DNA of 62,860 bases, the filler included, from Dicyema japonicum (taxonomy: Eukaryota; Animalia; Dicyemida): assembly GCA_011109175.1 (NCBI GenBank). It is 9 parts of 9 records of this genome, joined end to end, with 100 filler letters (N's around TTAATTAATTAA, not from the genome) between each part and the next. Parts side by side here need not be neighbours in the genome. Positions count along the whole stretch, not along the records: positions 53,297 to 61,195 come from RDEW01000211.1; 8 more parts are not named here. One strand, given 5' to 3'. Below, piece by piece: positions 3,651-61,294 of the stretch. Position numbers and translations under genes: made by a program. The notes beneath the pieces are model-generated. The model searched no databases and was not told the DNA's origin. It saw nothing but the letters and a program-made list of their open reading frames with translations. The stretch's first letter is position 1, and each line of letters opens with the position of its first letter.

Positions 3651-4427
3651 GAGTTTATTTAATTTAAAGTTTAAATCACCGAGATGCCATAAAATATAAG
3701 AACTGAGGATTATGGAGTACTAATTATAATTTATACATATAGGTTATATACTTCCAAGAATACAGGATGACTAGTGATATAACAATTGTTACAAAAAATT
3801 AACAGAATCGAAAAAACTTTAATTATTCTTGATGATGCTTGATGCCACATTTGTCAAAATTCATTATTTAATGCCTGTCTTGATGTTTTTAGACTGAACG
3901 TCTCCAAGAAATTACAAAAATACAAAATTGGGGAAAATTAGCGATTACTATTTTAACTAATAAATAAAATGGCTTTTTTATTTTAACATGTTATTTAATT
4001 TAAAACAAATTAAAAAATAGTATTAAAAAGGATAAATAATTTTAGGGGGCAACCTATGGATTTAGGGCGCTTTTTATTGGGCAGGGCTTAAACTTTATTT
4101 TTTTAAGCCGTCTAGAATAAACTTTCGTCACTGAACTTTCACTATTTTGAACGTTGACAAAAAAATGTGACAATTTTGTTACGACATGACAGCTTGGTAT
4201 GGATGTTAAAAAATTTGTAGACACAGAGAAGGATTAGTCCCATATTATTTCTGAATACGAACCTTTTAAGTAATTATAAACTGAATACAATAACACTAAT
4301 GTTCAATTTCATATTTAGATCGATGCANNNNNNNNNNNNNNNNNNNNNNNNNNNNNNNNNNNNNNNNNNNNTTAATTAATTAANNNNNNNNNNNNNNNNN
4401 NNNNNNNNNNNNNNNNNNNNNNNNNNN

Positions 4428-4625
4428 AAAATTCGCTAGTGGCTGCACCGCGGATAGCAAACGAGTTACCTCGCAAGATTGCTATAGATACCCTCTGGTA
4501 CAGCCAGCTGGTTTCCCGGTGGTCATTAGTCTGCTTTCCGATGAGATTCCCAATGACAGAGAGAATCCTCTTCCCCGCGGACCCAATCACTCCGCTCGTC
4601 TCCACGGAAATTGGGACGAAGTGAT
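4428..4625 (-). mobile_element. CRE-like non-LTR C-terminal fragment
   Basis: FVPISVETSGVIG..RETSWLYQRVSIAILRGNS; near-identical copy at 13030-13140. Confidence 0.75.
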
Positions 4626-4639
4626 ATGGGTGCAGATCG

Positions 4640-5579
4640 TTCCAAAAAAGTGGTAACTTCAATATTTCTTTGCCGGGTCAAATCGGAAACCCCGTTGTTT
4701 GGTGTGTGCAGAAGAAATTTCAGTGGTCAAAGATATAACATTCGACGACACGACGAAACCCACTTTGCTCAAGAATACAATAACTTGACGGGAAAAATGA
4801 GAAAGGATAACTACGACGCATTACTTGCATGTCTGCAGAAGCAGTAATTTTCTTTTACCAAATTTCGGGATGATAGTGAGGCAGCTGTCAAAGCTAGCTA
4901 CGTTATTTCTCGGGAAATAGCGTTAGCATCAAAAAGTAATTATAGTGACTGACCACTGATTTGCATAATCAACTCAAAAAAATCAGTTCATTTTTTTCTA
5001 TTGCCATTGACTAGAGCACCGACATTATGGATGTGGTTTAGTTAGCTATATTCATTCGTGGTGTGGGAGAGAATTTGACAGTCACAGAGGAATTCCTTGA
5101 TCTGATATCTATGATAGACACCACTACGGCATGAAATATTTAAATCTCTCGTCAGTGTGTTGGATAACTTCGGAGTGGAATGTGGATGGTGCTCCATCAA
5201 TGATTGGGAAAAAAACTGGCGTTGTGGCTCAATTCAGAGAGAAGGTTCAGGCTGCAAATTTTTCTGATCTTGCAGCTAACTTACAATTGGAAATGATTGA
5301 TTTGAAATATGACTCGTATCTGAAAAATAAATTTCCTCTGGTGACCTTAGACAGCTTTTATAGACATCTCTTGTCGAAGTATCCAAACTTAACAGCCTTA
5401 GCTGCGAAGATTTTTTCAATGTTTGGAAGTACACATCTATGTGAACGATTTATTATAAAAATCATAATAGGAAACAAATATCCTGTTAAATCGCAAAAAT
5501 TCAAAAATTAATATTCTGGCCCGCGGAATCCAAAATTTGTTTAATCCGGCCCGCGGAAGAAATGAGTTTGACACCCCTG
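4640..5579 (+). mobile_element. hAT transposon remnant (SPIN/GTF2IRD2-like), deleted
   Basis: KP.CLVC..YNIRRHDETH N-terminal motif; KIFSMFGSTHLCE dimerisation motif; right TIR GTTTGACACCCCTG ending at 5579, inverse of the left TIR at 23478. Confidence 0.8.
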
Positions 5580-47880: not shown

Positions 47881-48105
47881 TAATTTATTTACCTGGATAC
47901 ACGGAAAAAGAAGTCAAAGTAAACAACTAATTGCAGTTGGGATAACCTCTCCAGTGGAGTGGGGGAGAGCAAATGATCATTTTTCGTGCCGGCCTGGCAC
48001 TGGCCGCCTCCTAGACAGGTGGATCAAATGACACCACTCTAATAGGAAGAGAGAGGAGGAACAGAAAACAAACATAAAACTTCTTTCTTTGGTTGATTAA
48101 TTAAA
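47881..48105 (-). mobile_element. ingi-dependent SINE-like element, deleted copy
   Basis: Colinear with 56618-56952; ribozyme-like head at 47975-48035 with mismatches. Confidence 0.8.
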
Positions 48106-53296: not shown

Positions 53297-53758
53297 AGAA
53301 TTAATTCTGAAAAACGATATCCATATGTGGCCAAGGTTATTGTTTTTACAAATAATTCTATAGGAGGGTAAATGTAAATATAAGGGTCATCCAGATATTA
53401 AATTTAAATTGATTGGTTATAAAAGAATCAATAATGGTGACGAACAAATGCTTTTGGATGTTCTCATTAATGTTGGTCCTGTTAGTGTCCATTTTGATGG
53501 TTATTTTATTTATGGTTATGTTCGAGGTAAAAAGTAAAATGAAACGTTTTAGGAATATTCCATATCAGAAATTGTTTATATATGCGATATGAGCATGTAA
53601 TGTCTTTTGTTGGTTATGGGACTACAAAAGGAGAAAAGTATTGGCTTATAAAAAATGGATGGGGCAAAGAATGGGGTATATCTGGCTATTTTAAACTTGA
53701 ACGAAATAAAAATAACTGCGGATTTCCTTACACTGCCACTTATCCAATAATCAAATAA
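53297..53758 (+). CDS. Papain-family (C1A, cathepsin L-like) cysteine protease, 3' exons
   Basis: Introns 53336-53363 (28 nt) and 53527-53552 (26 nt); spliced product YPY..GKCKY..GPVSV..EHVMSFVGYG..YWLIKNGWG..WG..GY..NCG, including catalytic His and Asn; absent from the ORF track. Confidence 0.88.
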
Positions 53759-53766
53759 TTTGATCG

Positions 53767-54078
53767 TTAATTTAATTTAATAACCTCGGATACACCGAGA
53801 AAGAAGTTAAAGTAAACAACTAATTAACTGTATCCAGTTTCCACTTCTACAGAAACAGAGTCCATCCGGAATCAGCACAAAAGGTAAGACGTCCATTACA
53901 TGCAGTTGTGAAAACCCCTCCAGTGGAGTGGGAAGAGCAAATGATGGCCTGGCACTGGGCGTCACCTAGACCGGTGGATCACATGACGCCACTCTGATAG
54001 GAAGAGAGAGGAAGTACCGACAAACAAGCAGAAAACTTCAACCAATTAACCACGCAGCCCCACATGAATCCACGCGGC
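53767..54078 (-). mobile_element. ingi-dependent SINE-like element
   Basis: Full-length homolog of 56618-56952; head has a deletion removing the P4 3' strand and J4/2. Confidence 0.85.
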
Positions 54079-54279
54079 TATAAAATATTAATCCGTTAAC
54101 TTTTGGTGTTTAAAGGGATTGAATGTTTTTAATAAGTCACTCATAATTTCAGTTTTTAATATAAAAAAATATCATTTTTATCCAATACATTACTCTATAT
54201 TAAAATTATATAAATTAATCGGGGGGAAATTGGCCCGTGCAAGAAGCTGTCTGGGTGAAACCACGAATTGGGATTACAG

Positions 54280-56426
54280 TTATTATTATTATTAATAACC
54301 CAAAAATCATCAGTTAAACTAATTAAAAGGAAAGCGCCATCAGGTGATCCCTGCTTCTCTCAGCAAGATGATCCCTCAAATTGGGTTGCCCTTATTGGTA
54401 GGGACATTTCCGTGTACGTTGACATTGAATTTCCTTTCAACCATTCATGGATCTTTCCAGATTAGTTTGCAATTTGTTTGTAGTTGTTGTAATACATGTA
54501 TCCTTGTAAGCATATATTATGTCATCGGCATACACAAGGGTTATGAAATTTTTGTCCGAGTCAATTGGAATACCATGCAAGAATAAGTCGAAAAACGACG
54601 GTAACACGGAGAACCCAGTGGCACGCCCTTTGGAAGAAATTGTGAAGGTTTGCAGTGCGTTCTTGTAGATAGGTCTTTCTTAAATCCGTGCTAGTAGGAT
54701 TCTTTAGGTAAATATGGGAATATGCGGTCCAAAACCATTTTCCTAAGAATTTTTGAAAATGCGCATAATGAGGATATTGGTCGATAAGAAGAAGGGGACT
54801 CTTTTGGTTTTCCAGGTTTGTGAACTGGGTGGATGGGAGCCAACCTCCACAGAGTTGGAATTGTGTTTCTATTTATGGATATGTTGTATATCTGTGTTGG
54901 TACTGTGAGTCGGGTCCAAGCTTTTTGATAACAATCATAGGAATTTTATTGTCCGCTTGAGTAGGTTAGTTTTTGGGATATAATGGCATTTTCAACTTCC
55001 ACTGGTGAAAAGGATATATGAACATGACGACATCTTGGTTTCATCAGTGATAGGGGAGACCCTCGTACTTTTATGGGGTAAATAGCTGTTCTGAACGTAG
55101 AACTTTATCATTCTGTCAAGTTTTTATTTGCAAAAATCACGACTGTTTTTTACTCAGTGATCAGAGAGTGTCTTACACATGATTGACATGGACACTTGTT
55201 TGTTAAACACGGAGGTGATTTTTCTCTGTTCGTCGATTTTTATTTTCTTAGATATTTTATTTCGTTATCAAGCACTTGGATTCTGTAGATAATTTCTAGT
55301 AATGGCCCTTGGATGCCTTTGAGTCGATTACGTTCATTCATAATCCTCTTCGTTTTGTGATCAAAACGTTTGATGTAGGATTCGAATGATCTTTCCATGA
55401 TAAATATCTTCATTGCCTTCTAAATCTTTTTGTTAACACAAGAGACTGCATTATCAAGTGAAACGTACTGCGTCAAAATCGGTTAAGTTCATGTCCACAT
55501 AATGAGCAAAAATTTTCCAACTAACGTTTATGTAATCTAGGAAAGTGTTTCATTTTCTTTCCGAGATTAGCGTGCCTTTCTTCCGAATGAAAATATGATT
55601 GTGGTCGCTCCAAATGTCATAAATCACAGACCATTTGGCAAGTGAAGCAATTTTAGGGATGGCAAGGGTCAAATCAGGTGAAGTCGTGTTGTCATAAGCT
55701 CTATAGGGTGTTCTTGTGTTCCTCCGATAGTCGTTTAAAGATTATGAAGTTATCCAGTTAAAGAGATAAAGAAACTTTTTTTTGCATCATCAGTTTGGCT
55801 TTTGTACCAGGTCGGGTGATTCGCAGTGGGGTCGCCACATATCAACAAATATTGGTATTAGCGAAACACATCCTGTGAGAAGCTAAATTCCTTTGGTAGA
55901 AGCTAGCAGGAAGAATGTAAATGTTCGCAAATGTGATATTTTCGATTCTTGTACGAATGGAAATTCCATTGTATTCCAATCGAGACGGAGGATTGTAATT
56001 TGAAGGCGTTATTGTGTGCCCGGTCTCACTTTTCATGAGAGTATAACTCCTCCACGGTCAAACTGACCTTTTTGATAACAATGTATCCGGGAAGTGTTGA
56101 AGTGGTGAAAGAGTGTGTCAGATTTGGCTCCTCTAAGAGACACACGTCGACGTCGAATTTCTTTGAGTGATTCTTGAGCTCAATTATCTTTTCTCTTAAT
56201 CCATTTATTTTGAGTTGGATGATGGAAAGAGATTTTGCTAGTCCAGGATTAGGTTTGATATCTCCAGAGATTATTAAGAGCGTTCTTAAACAGGTCAGAT
56301 GAGTAATTCTGAGAGAGCCGTCCAAGAGTGACATTCTTCTTGGATTGGGGTGAGCAAATGATTCTTTTTTACTGTGTATCCAATTCCACAGTTAGCGCCA
56401 CCAGGGACGGCGAACTACATGACGCG
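54280..56426 (-). mobile_element. ingi-like LINE with both ends present, internally deleted and degenerate
   Basis: Ribozyme-like head 56360-56426; 2A-like LLIISGDIKPNPGL; APE motifs; ends LLREAGIT* (54340) with a (TAA)n tail. Confidence 0.8.
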
Positions 56427-56617
56427 CGCTAATTCTATATTTTGAAGTTGTCCGCGGAAACGCTTACTCCGTAATGTCAGCAGCCGCTCTTCTTCGTTAT
56501 TGCTAATAAATAATAGCTTATTGTTAAATAAAACGTGTTTAATTAAAAAAATTTAGTAGATAATAATAATGATACATCAGAGATCACAGTTACACATTAA
56601 GTAAAAAGAGATCTCAG

Positions 56618-56952
56618 GCCGCGTGACGCCATGTGGTGCTGCGTGGTTAATTGGTTGAAGTTTTCTGCTTGCTTGTCTGTTCCATCTCTCTCCTGCTAAT
56701 AGAGTGGCGTCATGTGATCCACCTGCCTAGGTGACGTCCAGTGTTAGGTCGGCACGAAAAAGGATCATTTGCTCTCCCCAACTCCACTGGAGAGGTTTTC
56801 ACAACTGCATGTAATAGACGTCTTACCTTTATGCTGATTCTGGATGGACTTTGTTTCTGTAGATGTGGAAACTAGATACACTTAATTATTTGTTTACTTT
56901 AACTTCTTCCTCGGTGTATCCGGGGTTATAAATAAAATAAATAAATAAATAA
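56618..56952 (+). mobile_element. ingi-dependent SINE-like element, best-preserved copy (~335 bp)
   Basis: Four homologs in the window; shares 5' head and 3' hairpin/(TAAA)n tail with the LINE; no ORF. Confidence 0.85.
56706..56766 (+). ncRNA. HDV-like ribozyme fold (candidate)
   Basis: P1 GGCGTC/GACGTC, P2 GATCC/GGATC, P3 ACC/GGT, P4 GTGTT/GGCAC, J4/2 CGAA, in HDV order. Confidence 0.7.
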
Positions 56953-59200
56953 TCACGTGATCCCAGTACGCTCTAGCAGAGACCTCAACTTGGCCGATTC
57001 TCTCCACACAAGCACGTTCGGCTGAATGACTTGATCTTTGTAGTCACACCGCCATGTTCTAAAGTTCATTCGTATCACGGATTGTAGAGGCATTAATTAC
57101 ACCATTGTTAGTATTCAATTCGACCTCACGTCTTCCTAGTCTGATGTAAAGAGATTTGTGACGGACTGGTAGACAAGCGATTCTTCAATAACCATTCGTT
57201 ATTTGTGGTCCAGATTTGTTTCAATCTCGAAATAGCAATTTGGATGTCCCGATTACGAGACGCAACGACAATGTCGTCGGGAAAAGTCATAATAATATCA
57301 TTTTCGGCTTCCAAGATGTTCCTTTCTCAGAAAAACTATTACTTTGATGGAGGTCTAAAATAATATCAACAAAAATACTTACAAGGTATGTCTTAGACTC
57401 TGATATTCCGAAAAATTGTAAAAGATAGATTTCTCAAAAGAGTCTCTCAAAAAGTTACGTCCTACCAAGCGACATGTCACAAAGATCTCCATTATCATCA
57501 GCACTTTTTAATTTGCTCTTATACGACCTACCAACCAATTCTGTCTCTGATATGCAAATTGAGTAATCTTTGCATCCAGAAAAAGTTACCATTACAAGAT
57601 CTCCTTAATCTTCTAAACAGATGATAGGAGACAAATTTAATAAACAAGAGTGTAAAAAAATCGTGCGAAATACTCTTCACCCTTAATAGGATATTGACTA
57701 ACTGTGTCTTAGACTGGTTCTGAAAGACAAAATCACGATTGGTTCCTCCAAGACTTGAACACTTGGGTAGTGATTTGTCTTCTTTCAAAAAAGTACAACT
57801 TTAGTTTTTTCGGTAGACCCTATATTTTTGAGACCTTGGTGAAGAGAACGAATGCAGTTTACCTCATATAAACCCATGGAACCTCGTGTCAACAGGAAGT
57901 GTATCTTGGAGAGAATGAGATAACTACTTAGCAAAGGTTCAAGGTTAAACTAACGACCTCAAGTTGCAACAACGGTTAAGAGTGATTTGGCGGGAGAAAG
58001 ATTCAAGAGATTACTGTTTATCCAAGTATTAAGGTGTCTTGAAGAAATTTAGAAGCGTTGGTGACATCATGGTAACTTGACACAAATAGCATACAAAATT
58101 ATTAATATATTTCGGTTAGTCTCTAAGCTAGACGCTAAAAAGAGTTGGGAAAAAAACGAGCTTTGAGGAACTCCATTAAATGGTAGTTGACATGATTAAG
58201 GAACGTCCACAAGGGATCTCCGTGTCGAGGATCTTGTCAGTCAATACGTGACACCAAGTTCTGTCGAAAGCTTTAAAACAATAATTGTTCCCTCTGACGG
58301 ATTGTGCTTATTAATTCCACCTACAACGAACTTAGTGAGTTTAGAAAGATGTGTAATGGGAATCGGAAAGTGGAAGGATTGATTAAATTAGTACTAGGCA
58401 TTCCCTCTACGAAACAACTGAGAGGAGTGAAATTGGATGGAAAGAGTAAGGTTCTGAAGGGTCATGGTGAGGCTTTAGAATATGGATGATCGTGAATTTT
58501 TACTGGCTGACTGACAGGTTCAATTAAGTTACAGTATAAGCCTGACAGGTTTAATTAAGTTACAGTATATACCTTAAAGACCTCTAGCATTCTAATTAAG
58601 TGACTTAGGGATAAGTTCTAAAATTAGAGACTGCGGAATAGCACTAAAGTCTGTGGCTAACATGTAGTCTCTTACAAGGAGTCCTTTCAAAGTAGGTCAT
58701 GATTCCACCCAGACCATGCCCAATTATACTAATGTACAAACCATGAGACCAAGTTATGTCATAGTTATTGAGTAATAATTCAATATATTGACTTTGTGCT
58801 TAAGTATTGTGTGTCTAAGCCAATTGATTATATATGTATTCATTAAATGTCTCCCCTAGAGAATGTCATATCTAAGGGACAATTGCTCGATGTAAATAAT
58901 CCCTAATTTATTATTTCCATCAAAATATATATTATTGATTTCCCCCTTCAATATGGTAATTATCTCCATTCAACTTTGCAGTAAAAGGGAGTGATTTCTG
59001 TATCAGCCTTTCCCATAAACTGTTACTATAAATCGAGGACTCAAGTGAAACTTGAAATCGCCTATGTCTTGAGTGACAAAGAAGCAATTCGAGGACTGGT
59101 CGAGGTCTCAGTTGGCGAACTGGTTAATGGTTCTCGATATGTGAACCCAAGTCAAATATAGACATATGGATTCCGCTCAGAAGAGGCATGGAAGAAAGCT
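56953..59200 (-). mobile_element. Degenerate ingi-like LINE
   Basis: Ends LLERTGIT* (56953); TFPDDIVVASR (YADD remnant) at 57126-57314; KAFD near 58270; 5' limit uncertain. Confidence 0.6.
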
Positions 59201-59899
59201 GAGATCACTCTTAGGTGATAACGAAGAAGGTTGTGTCTTTTTCCTTCACATAATCTTAATTTATGTTTTGTTAATCGTTTCCTACTATATAACTCAGGAA
59301 CTTGAGGATTTTCTTGGATCAAAAATGAAACTCTAGAATAGTCAACAAAACCAAAGTGTCTCGAGGTGGCAGACAAATTCTTAGAATCGAGACGAGTATG
59401 CCACCAACTGTTGAGGAAGGAAAATACTTAGTGAGATGAGGGAAACGTATATAAATAGGAAACGAAGTAGTGTAGATTTGAAGATTCTGTAACTGGAAAT
59501 GGGTAGAGTTATCTCTCAGGTCGTTTATAGGATTATAAATATTATCCCATAAAGAGGGAAACCGATCGAATATTTTTGCTGGAATTCACGAAGACAATTC
59601 AAAAATGGTGGGATTGCTAGTGAATCAAATATTCATTAACAATAAATATAATGACCCCAACAGATGAAGAGTCTTTGACACTATTAACAAATTAGCGTAG
59701 AGATTAGTGTCGTTTGCGTCGTATTAGCTGTTGATTCGATTTCGCCATCTAGTTGGTCGAGGATTTCTTTTCTGCTCTTAGCCTTATTCAATTCATAGAA
59801 GCGTCATTAGACCAACCTAACTTAGAAGACCACCAATGCCTGGCCGGCATCCAAAAAGGATTCCTATTTTTAGTAATTTGATTTACGGTTTTTTTACTT

Positions 59900-60470
59900 A
59901 AACGAGAATCACAGACAAATTAAGAGAGATTAAACGGATTTTAGGTGATCCCAACCATCTCTCATTTGTTTGATGTTCGTTCTGGAATTCATGTTACTTG
60001 GAAATTGTAAGGTTCCCGTTTCTTCACAAGTTTCTCGAAAGGAGTTGTCTCAATTGGAAAGTGGAGAATCCTTAAGAGCTAAAAGTGGTGAAAAGTTAGT
60101 TAGTTTTTTTCTAAACAATTGATTACGTAACAAGACAATCAAAAAAATCAGCTGATAGGATGGAATAGCTGTTTCCTTTATCAACTGCCAGAAAAATGTT
60201 TTAAAATTACCATTCTGTTCCCCGACGCTCATTACTAACTTTTAAAATCATTGACATACGCGATCTTGGGCCCGAAGACTCCACTCGTCTCGAAAACAAC
60301 GAGCTGTACATGGAATCTTGTGGAGATGCTGTCGCATTTTTTATCTTGAAATTATCTAAAGTCCTATCACAGATAAAATAAAAGGAATGGTTGGCCGGCA
60401 GGTGATCCCAGTCTCCTTAAGCAGCCGTCCTAATCTTTCTCGGTGTTACTTACGAGAGCCGACACATTAC
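59900..60470 (-). mobile_element. Two ingi-like 3' end fragments
   Basis: EMVGIT* (stop 59941) and HRERLGRLLKETGITC (~60400-60450), compare HRERVRELLREAGIT*. Confidence 0.55.
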
Positions 60471-60624
60471 CTATATGAATTTATTTTACTTTTAAAACCC
60501 CAAGAACAACAAGAAAGAAGTATTAACTCGCTAATTAGTCCTCTAGCATCTCTCGATTTCTCCTCGACTGTTCCACCATCGGTCCAAATCCTGTATAAAT
60601 GAGACGTTTTTAGTAATTTGCTAG

Positions 60625-60741
60625 TTTATTAACATCGGATACACCGAGAAAGAAGTTAAAGTTAACAACTAATTAAGTGTATCCAATTTCCACTTTTACA
60701 GAAGCGCCACCTGGACAGATGGATCATATGACACCCGCGGC
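60625..60741 (-). mobile_element. ingi-dependent SINE-like element, short deleted copy
   Basis: Head P1-P3 joined directly to the 3' part and terminal hairpin. Confidence 0.75.
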
Positions 60742-61294
60742 AAGGAATTTGCTTCTTCCCTAATAAAATGATAATAGTAATAAAGCCTTTTCACGAGAAC
60801 CATAGCTCCGCATAGGCAGGACACACACTTTATTTAAGTAAATAACAGTTAATTTTAACTAATAGAACCAAGGAATGATCTTCACTTTTGCTATGACAGC
60901 AGTTTTCATATTCAACTTGAGTCGCTAGCAGAATGGAGAGCAAACTTTGAAGGGTATAAAACCATAGATCTCTCATGAATCGGCATTCAAGATGATTTCA
61001 AAGCATCTCTTTGTCATTTTCAAAGAAAAGACTAGTCGAATTCTGGAAATGTTGCTTCAAATCATAAACATTATGTGCAGTCGTTTGTCCTCAATCGACA
61101 AAACGATGATTGAGTCACTTCTTGAACTAATTCTCATTGATACTTTCAACAAAACGGAATCTTTGAAAAAGGGACGATTAGGAATCGTCAGAGTGNNNNN
61201 NNNNNNNNNNNNNNNNNNNNNNNNNNNNNNNNNNNNNNNTTAATTAATTAANNNNNNNNNNNNNNNNNNNNNNNNNNNNNNNNNNNNNNNNNNN

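Follow-up and report, generated by a model that had tools for sequence, protein, structure and literature searches.

At one locus of the dicyemid Dicyema japonicum, a non-coding retroposon of ~335 bp lies among decayed long interspersed nuclear elements (LINEs), and this arrangement raises the questions of whether the short element is a non-autonomous partner of the LINEs and whether the 5' head common to both folds as a self-cleaving ribozyme of the hepatitis delta virus (HDV) type. The window is the whole stretch of 62,860 nucleotides, along which all positions are counted, and the analysed DNA is one piece of it, 53297-61195 (RDEW01000211.1), with a G+C content of 37%. Within this piece are three copies of the short element (A, B and C), a degraded LINE (LINE1) and a second LINE (LINE2) whose 3' end is split by copy B.

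The short element and its relation to the LINE

The short element shares sequence with LINE1 at both of its ends. Alignment of its head block with the 5' end of LINE1 gives a score of 55, against 20.2 +/- 3.1 for shuffled sequences, and alignment of the two tails gives a score of 32, which is reached by 0.4% of shuffles. The 3' hairpin provides a further link. All three copies preserve its stem, GGATACAC/GTGTATCC, from which the LINE counterpart, GGGATCAC/GTGATCYC, differs by one extra compensated A-T pair; both hairpins occupy the same location and are followed by an A/T simple repeat. The element combines the first ~80 nt of the 5' untranslated region (UTR) of a LINE with a body of unrelated sequence and with a 3' module that comprises a LINE-like hairpin and a simple-repeat tail. 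A long imperfect hairpin of the body (~80 nt) showed no similarity to LINE1 within the piece.

These features bear out the proposal, made in an earlier sequence-only reading of this DNA, that the element is a non-autonomous partner of the LINE. Because the copies are dispersed and have sharp 5' ends, no open reading frame (ORF), an A/T-rich repeat tail, a 5' block derived from the LINE and a LINE-like 3' hairpin and tail, the partner relation is well supported and very probably correct, although the LINEs in the piece are degraded and the relation is read from decayed LINE copies. By analogy with stringent pairs of LINEs and short interspersed nuclear elements (SINEs), the 3' hairpin is presumably what the LINE reverse transcriptase (RT) recognises.

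The three copies lie dispersed within 7.9 kb (Table 1), and copies A and B are 84.4% identical across 326 nt. All three begin with GCCGCG, and the bases that precede it are unrelated (...TTTTATA in copy A, ...ATCTCAG in copy B and ...ATTCCTT in copy C), which fixes the 5' end of the element at 56618. The sequence-only reading had counted four copies sharing both head and tail; copies A and B are indeed full and copy C shares both ends, but the latter is a short variant rather than a full 335-bp element. The fourth, at 47881, lies outside the analysed piece, as does the better-preserved LINE of that reading. Copy C runs from GCCGCG through P1, the 5' strand of P2, P3 and the 3' strand of P1 to a P4-like segment, and from there directly into the 3' hairpin and tail, so that the leader, J4/2 and the 3' strand of P2 are all missing (helices and junctions of the fold described below). 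In copy A, a 13-nt deletion has taken out the 3' half of P4, the CGAA motif and two bases of P2. The copies in the piece are decayed, and only copy B retains all parts of the fold. No coding capacity was found in copy B, whose longest ORF is 44 aa, and exact-pattern scans for further copies in metagenome contigs and prokaryotic genome contigs returned 0 matches. Copy B is best explained as an aged copy of a non-coding retroposon derived from a LINE, either short internally deleted or SINE-like.

Table 1. Positions of the short-element copies, the candidate fold and the LINE features along the window
Feature	Position	Strand	Remarks
Copy B, full ~335-bp non-autonomous retroposon	56618-56952	+	full-length match to copy A; (AAAT)n-like tail
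Copy A, full copy	53767-54078	-	match to copy B
Copy C, short variant	60609-60741	-	tail of 95 nt (60609-60703) and 36-nt head fragment to 60741
Common 5' terminus GCCGCG (copies A, B, C)	56618-56623	+	upstream flanks unrelated
Left copy of 13-nt direct repeat (diverged duplicate of P1 5' strand and J1/2)	56623-56635	+	compared with 56704-56716, 85%
Leader spacer, 68 nt	56636-56703	+	A/B subfamily only; contains TTTT run at 56660
Block homologous to LINE1 5' end	56707-56786	+	LINE1 56425-56340 (-); 80 nt
Candidate HDV-like double pseudoknot	56706-56767	+	drawn on copy B; descriptor matches
P1 (6-7 bp)	56706-12/56732-38	+	G-U pair at 56707/56737
J1/2			2-3 nt
P2 (6 bp)	56715-20/56762-67	+	
P3	56722-23/56730-31 (2 bp), or 56721-23/56730-32 (3 bp)	+	
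L3, 6 nt	56724-29	+	
P1.1 (2 bp)	U56724-A56740, G56725-C56739	+	
P4, weak hairpin	56742-54	+	
J4/2, CGAAAAA	56755-61	+	C56755 is the candidate catalytic base
Long imperfect hairpin (~80 nt), element body	56794-56872	+	predicted fold; similar fold in copy A
3' hairpin, ~30-nt loop	56875-56920	+	arms 56875-82/56913-20
LINE1, degraded APE and RT LINE	54283-56432	-	head 56346-56425; longest ORF 102 aa; weak RVT_1 matches; start of APE domain
LINE1 start codon ATG	56334	-	~12 nt past head block
LINE1 YADD box	near 54500	-	
LINE1 3' hairpin region and (TAA)n-like tail	54283-54350	-	
LINE2, RT fragments	56953-58500	-	3' end split by copy B
LINE2 3' end remainder: 3' arm of hairpin and TTA-repeat tail	56557-56617	-	other side of copy B
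LINE 3' stems compared with P2	54336-54350, 56953-56966, 59945-59960, 60399-60412		

A candidate HDV-like fold in the shared head

On copy B, the head can be drawn as a candidate HDV-like double pseudoknot that starts within 1 nt of the start of LINE homology, its location being set independently by the block shared between LINE and SINE-like element. Several particulars of the sequence-only reading are present in the DNA: the canonical J4/2 motif CGAA lies at 56755-56758 of copy B, the loop UG has the option of pairing with CA as P1.1, and P1 carries U-A in copies A and B in place of the U-G of copy C and LINE1. The P2 strands of LINE1 in this piece read AGTTC/GAATC, not the GGTCC/GGACC from which the sequence-only reading had P2 switch, and the 3-bp version of P3 needs A56721-U56732 in place of A56712-U56732. 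In nested folding, P1 appears in the minimum-free-energy structure and P2 in the centroid, as expected for two pseudoknotted helices. An alternative P1 formed by the terminal GCCGCG was tried by hand and rejected, as its sole partner lies inside the insert specific to copies A and B and too few bases then remain for P2.

The P2 duplex (TGATCC/GGATCA; 56715-56720/56762-56767) is identical in sequence to the stem of the hairpin at the LINE 3' end, but its loop lies on the opposite side. This likeness could be due to a second site for the LINE protein, to pairing between the 5' and 3' ends, or to coincidence of a palindromic GATC core.

Three descriptors were used in searches for the fold. The canonical HDV descriptor specifies a 7-bp P1, a 3-bp P3, an L3 of 5-8 nt and a CNRA motif abutting P2, and the semi-strict one a P1 of 6-7 bp starting from G, a P3 of 3 bp, an L3 of 5-8 nt, a P1.1 of 2 bp, a P2 of at least 6 bp and CNRA within 3 nt of P2; a relaxed version was used as well. 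Chance controls comprised dinucleotide shuffles of the whole piece, shuffles of the 91-nt head, column shuffles of the alignment and 3' partners slid out of register. Both the relaxed and the semi-strict descriptor have their sole match in the piece at 56706. When the 91-nt head itself is shuffled, matches appear in 11 of 4000 (relaxed) and 2-6 of 5000 (semi-strict) sequences, figures that are optimistic, since both descriptors were tuned after copy B had been seen.

Comparison of four heads (those of the three short-element copies and of LINE1) shows that 93% of pair cells are standard, against 34-50% with slid 3' partners, and that this proportion of pairs is kept despite ~30% divergence among the heads. 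Four pairs of P1 carry one-sided wobble changes that leave the pairing intact (G-C/G-U and U-A/U-G), and P2 contains one double change, from C-G to U-A.

A number of observations weigh against a ribozyme in the head. The canonical descriptor has no match anywhere in the piece, and shuffled pieces yield on average 2.2 matches to the relaxed and 0.39 to the semi-strict descriptor; as the result of a blind search, the fold is not significant. In folding energy it does not outdo shuffles (z +1.05); its J4/2 is 7 nt long rather than 4, with three extra A between C56755-GAA and P2, and U56732 is contested by P1 and P3. Rfam scans at the permissive threshold of E <= 10, covering the whole piece and the isolated heads of copy B and LINE1 (96- and 111-nt windows), gave 0 matches to HDV, CPEB3, drz-Agam or other models, a negative that is weak evidence because the Rfam models of the HDV clade are narrow and the pseudoknot is not encodable in them. 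Across the four heads there are two double and six one-sided changes, which 58 of 500 column shuffles equal or better; with only two double changes matched that often, covariation is not demonstrated. Moreover, only copy B among the four has a complete head: CGAA is missing from copy A, everything past P4 from copy C, and the C of J4/2 from LINE1, where J4/2 reads TAAAAAA. Finally, the copies start upstream of the predicted cut (56705/56706), by 7 nt in copy C and by 88 nt in copies A and B. Since all of them retain sequence 5' of the cut, either the copied RNAs were uncleaved there or the 5' end was set by transcription starting at GCCGCG. This offset is the strongest argument against a simple role in 5' processing, and it favours a promoter or protein-binding function of the head.

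The sequence-only reading that the short element carries the same ribozyme fold as the LINE therefore survives in part: the fold is drawable on copy B and rare in head shuffles, but it fails the canonical descriptor and Rfam and is broken in copies A and C and in LINE1. An active or formerly active HDV-like ribozyme, as judged from sequence, is a plausible though tentative interpretation of the head and, at less than even odds, the leading one.

The leader, rival explanations and a possible mechanism

A leader of ~89 nt upstream of the proposed ribozyme is common to copies A and B (131-nt arms, 85%), in agreement with the ~90 nt noted previously, and is absent from copy C. The earlier observation that this leader begins with a partial copy of the head corresponds to a 13-nt direct repeat (56623-56635/56704-56716), whose spacing of 81 nt is the same in copies A and B. 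Wherever the left repeats of A and B differ, one of them carries the base of the right repeat, indicating that the ancestral repeat was probably perfect. Copy C reads GCCGCG, G and then the head; because it joins the terminus straight to the head, the leader is a lineage-specific 81-nt duplication or insertion within the head rather than an ancestral 5' UTR. On these sequence comparisons, the puzzle of the leader is largely resolved as an event of the A/B lineage. Two other origins were considered and rejected. A tandem duplication of the whole head, with two full signatures as in SIDER2, is not supported, since past the 13-nt repeat the similarity of the leader to the head and to LINE1 is not significant (p 0.09-0.7). 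Descent of the leader from the DNA that lies 5' of the LINE1 head is likewise not supported, their alignment scoring below the shuffle mean.

Several explanations compete for the conserved head. It is possible, though we lean away from it, that the head is a 5' module acting at the DNA level or by protein binding, either an internal promoter or start region or a site for the LINE protein, with transcription starting at GCCGCG and the pseudoknot incidental. Three copies do share a GCCGCG start upstream of the cut, and the strands of P1 form inverted half sites (CGTCA ... TGACG) resembling a cAMP response element (CRE), between which stand two E-box-like hexamers (CATGTG and CACCTG); such palindromic content gives helices free. 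The CRE-like and E-box-like labels are inferred by comparison with textbook consensus sequences. The identity of the P2 duplex with the LINE 3' stem (GGGATCAC/GTGATCYC) fits the same explanation, as do the binding of the R2 protein to both UTRs of its own RNA (PMC6765202) and the fact that Pr77 of L1Tc is itself an internal promoter (PMC3383444). What it leaves unexplained is the coincidence of P2, CGAA and P1.1, found in 2-11 of 4000-5000 head shuffles, and the pair-preserving substitutions in P1; promoter and ribozyme are, besides, not mutually exclusive, as L1Tc demonstrates. A chance match in a decayed repeat, with the head conserved merely by descent from the LINE 5' end and without any RNA function, is unlikely. 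It would account for the 0.39-2.2 matches per shuffled piece to the descriptors that fit copy B, for the negative Rfam result, for a folding energy no better than in shuffles and for the incompleteness of three of the four heads, but not for a match lying exactly on the 80-nt LINE/SINE block, for the rarity of the fold given the head's own composition, or for the retention of 93% of pairs despite ~30% divergence.

Two further explanations are largely refuted. That the element is a classical SINE of RNA polymerase III (Pol III), with a head derived from tRNA, 5S, 7SL or snRNA in its leader and a tail borrowed from the LINE, is highly improbable: the ~335-bp length and LINE-like tail would suit it, and the leader segment TAATTGGTTGAAG is faintly like a tRNA D-arm, but ARAGORN finds no tRNA, no Rfam family is matched in the leader (E <= 10, 111-nt window), Pol III would stop at the TTTT runs (56660 and 56795), which occur in copy A too, and copy C has no leader at all. 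The least probable account assigns the head to another self-cleaving class, such as the twister variants of Perere-3 or the hammerhead of the Sm-alpha SINE in Schistosoma. Ribozymes of these kinds do occur in flatworm LINEs, at the 5' end, and in a schistosome SINE of ~335 bp (PMC8501958, PMC6765202); here, no twister, hammerhead, pistol, hatchet or hairpin model is matched at E <= 10, and the conserved twister strings of PMC8501958 are absent from the sequence.

Most likely, the short element inherited the shared head from the LINE as a functional module of its 5' end. Under the ribozyme interpretation, the fold in the LINE, ~12 nt ahead of the start codon, would free the element RNA from an upstream transcript and leave a 5'-OH RNA that could be translated. 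The short element would be copied in trans by the endonuclease and RT of its partner LINE, which may recognise the 3' hairpin and tail and prime on nicked target DNA, and copy B could have reached the 3' end of LINE2 by such copying. In the A/B subfamily, the 81-nt duplication or insertion would have moved the fold inward, with the copied RNAs uncleaved at that site. This combined account, from derivation from a LINE to a ribozyme in the head, is favoured with slightly less than even confidence.

As to the origin of the short element, the P4 segment of LINE1 (...GGAATTGGATACAC...) resembles the start of the short-element 3' module (...GGAAAYTRGATACAC...), a marginal similarity (p 0.05), and is also like the 5' arm of the hairpin at the LINE 3' end. 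Copy C passes from the head through its P4-like segment directly into the tail. A deletion or template switch from the P4 segment at the LINE 5' end to the arm of the 3' hairpin may have produced a short internally deleted element, relative to which the A/B form would carry extra 5' UTR, the body hairpin (56794-56872) and the 81-nt duplication.

A more specific proposal, which we consider rather improbable, is an active ribozyme of unusual build (7-nt J4/2, short P3 and L3, and a conserved 7 nt 5' of the cut) in a LINE family with a 2A-like motif. Two alternative 5' strands of P1 in copies A and B would make cleavage partial, the uncleaved RNA serving as template and the cleaved 5'-OH RNA as by-product or decoy; if true, this would be a regulated ribozyme within a non-autonomous element, in an animal lineage from which none has been described. 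If the head cleaves, another LINE family with its short parasite joins the list of elements with HDV-like 5' processing (R2, RTE and L1Tc/ingi), and a ribozyme shifted inward by duplication would bear on how cleavage is reconciled with inheritance of the 5' end. If it does not, the locus contains a LINE/SINE pair of the ordinary sort, whose members have a 5' UTR block and a 3' hairpin in common; this would be useful for repeat annotation but no surprise.

Genomic surroundings and comparison with known systems

The position of copy B had been described as tail-to-tail on a LINE stop codon, a description that has to be revised. When the two halves of LINE2 on either side of the copy are joined (56953-57040 and 56510-56617), they align to the 3' end of LINE1 with a score of 65, against 21.7 +/- 3.7 for shuffles, and copy B was accordingly inserted in the last codons or 3' UTR of LINE2, splitting its hairpin. 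The flanks of copy B, TCAG and TCAC, are equal at three of four bases and form an imperfect target duplication of ~4 bp, the site having been rebuilt from LINE1/LINE2 homology; around copies A and C, the flanks are too AT-rich for a target duplication to be called. Two further 5'-truncated LINE 3' ends bearing the GGGATCACCT signature are located at 59945-60020 (-) and 60394-60610 (-). Copy C adjoins the latter, and the region holds nested insertions from this LINE/SINE family. At 58511-58572 (+), on the presumed 5' side of LINE2, a 31-nt unit is duplicated in tandem with 90% identity.

The N-terminus of LINE1 (56232-56334, -) contains a 2A-like 'ribosome skipping' motif, LLIISGDIKPNPG(L), just ahead of the APE domain. 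Its GDIKPNPG aligns with GDV(E/S)xNPGP of distant LINE-like proteins, including some of Octopus sinensis, and the final P of the motif is mutated in this dead copy. A word-index protein search with the 102-aa LINE1 N-terminus as query gave 0 matches, and an exhaustive HMMER search gave 13 weak ones (<= 45 bits, 30-46% identity), among which the only named ones are from Octopus sinensis; the ESM Atlas yielded unnamed clusters only.

The host sequence includes the last two exons of a cathepsin L/K-like cysteine protease of the papain family at 53361-53755 (+), which reads KNGWG in place of the usual KNSWG. A PDB search confirmed the family, with structures of cathepsins K, H and L matched by the final exon (53594-53755) at E about 1e-15, and copy A is located ~10 nt past the stop codon of this gene, i.e. 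in its 3' UTR. An ATG-initiated frame of at least 68 codons (60992-61195, +) runs off the end of the piece and may be an exon of a host gene.

Stringent LINE/SINE pairs, such as UnaL2/UnaSINE1 of the eel, share a 3' stem-loop and a short-repeat tail, and the heads of their SINEs are of the tRNA type transcribed by Pol III. The 3' hairpin and tandem-repeat tail described here are alike, and are likely the basis of mobilisation in trans; unlike in those pairs, the head is derived from the LINE and contains internal TTTT runs.

HDV-like ribozymes are known at the 5' ends of LINEs and in their deletion derivatives (PMC4035085; PMC6765202). Close parallels are found in trypanosomatids, where, as here, a 5' head of ~77-80 nt is common to a LINE and to short non-coding elements derived from it (L1Tc/NARTc, ingi/RIME and SIDER); theirs folds as an HDV-like ribozyme (L1TcRz), and Pr77 of L1Tc acts as both promoter and ribozyme (PMC3383444). 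SIDER2 carries two tandem head signatures, recalling the duplicated start of the head at this locus, and many decayed copies of the trypanosomatid elements no longer fold or cleave (PMC4035085, PMC3185411, PMC3383444). There are also differences. L1Tc, NARTc and SIDER are cut at nucleotide +1 of the element (PMC4035085), whereas the copies described here begin at least 7 nt upstream of the predicted cut; the two groups show no sequence similarity, any cleavage or promoter activity of the head here is putative, and the host is of animal type, with a cathepsin L gene that has introns and a LINE with a 2A-like motif.

In Drosophila, the short internally deleted elements (SIDEs) of R2 retain both the HDV-like ribozyme at the 5' end and the 3' UTR recognised by the RT, and arise by internal deletion (PMC3414825, PMC6765202). 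Copy C resembles a deletion product of this type, in that the P4-like GGATACAC segment of its head is joined to the tail. However, R2 is specific to 28S rDNA, is co-transcribed by RNA polymerase I and uses a restriction-like endonuclease, whereas the elements of D. japonicum are dispersed and their LINE is of the APE type. The 5' twister variants of Perere-3 from Schistosoma mansoni (PMC8501958) belong to a different ribozyme class, and no twister motif occurs in the present sequence. LINE/parasite pairs that share an HDV-like head are therefore already known from R2/SIDE and from L1Tc/NARTc/SIDER, and relative to these the internal position of the candidate ribozyme in copies A and B is a modest curiosity.

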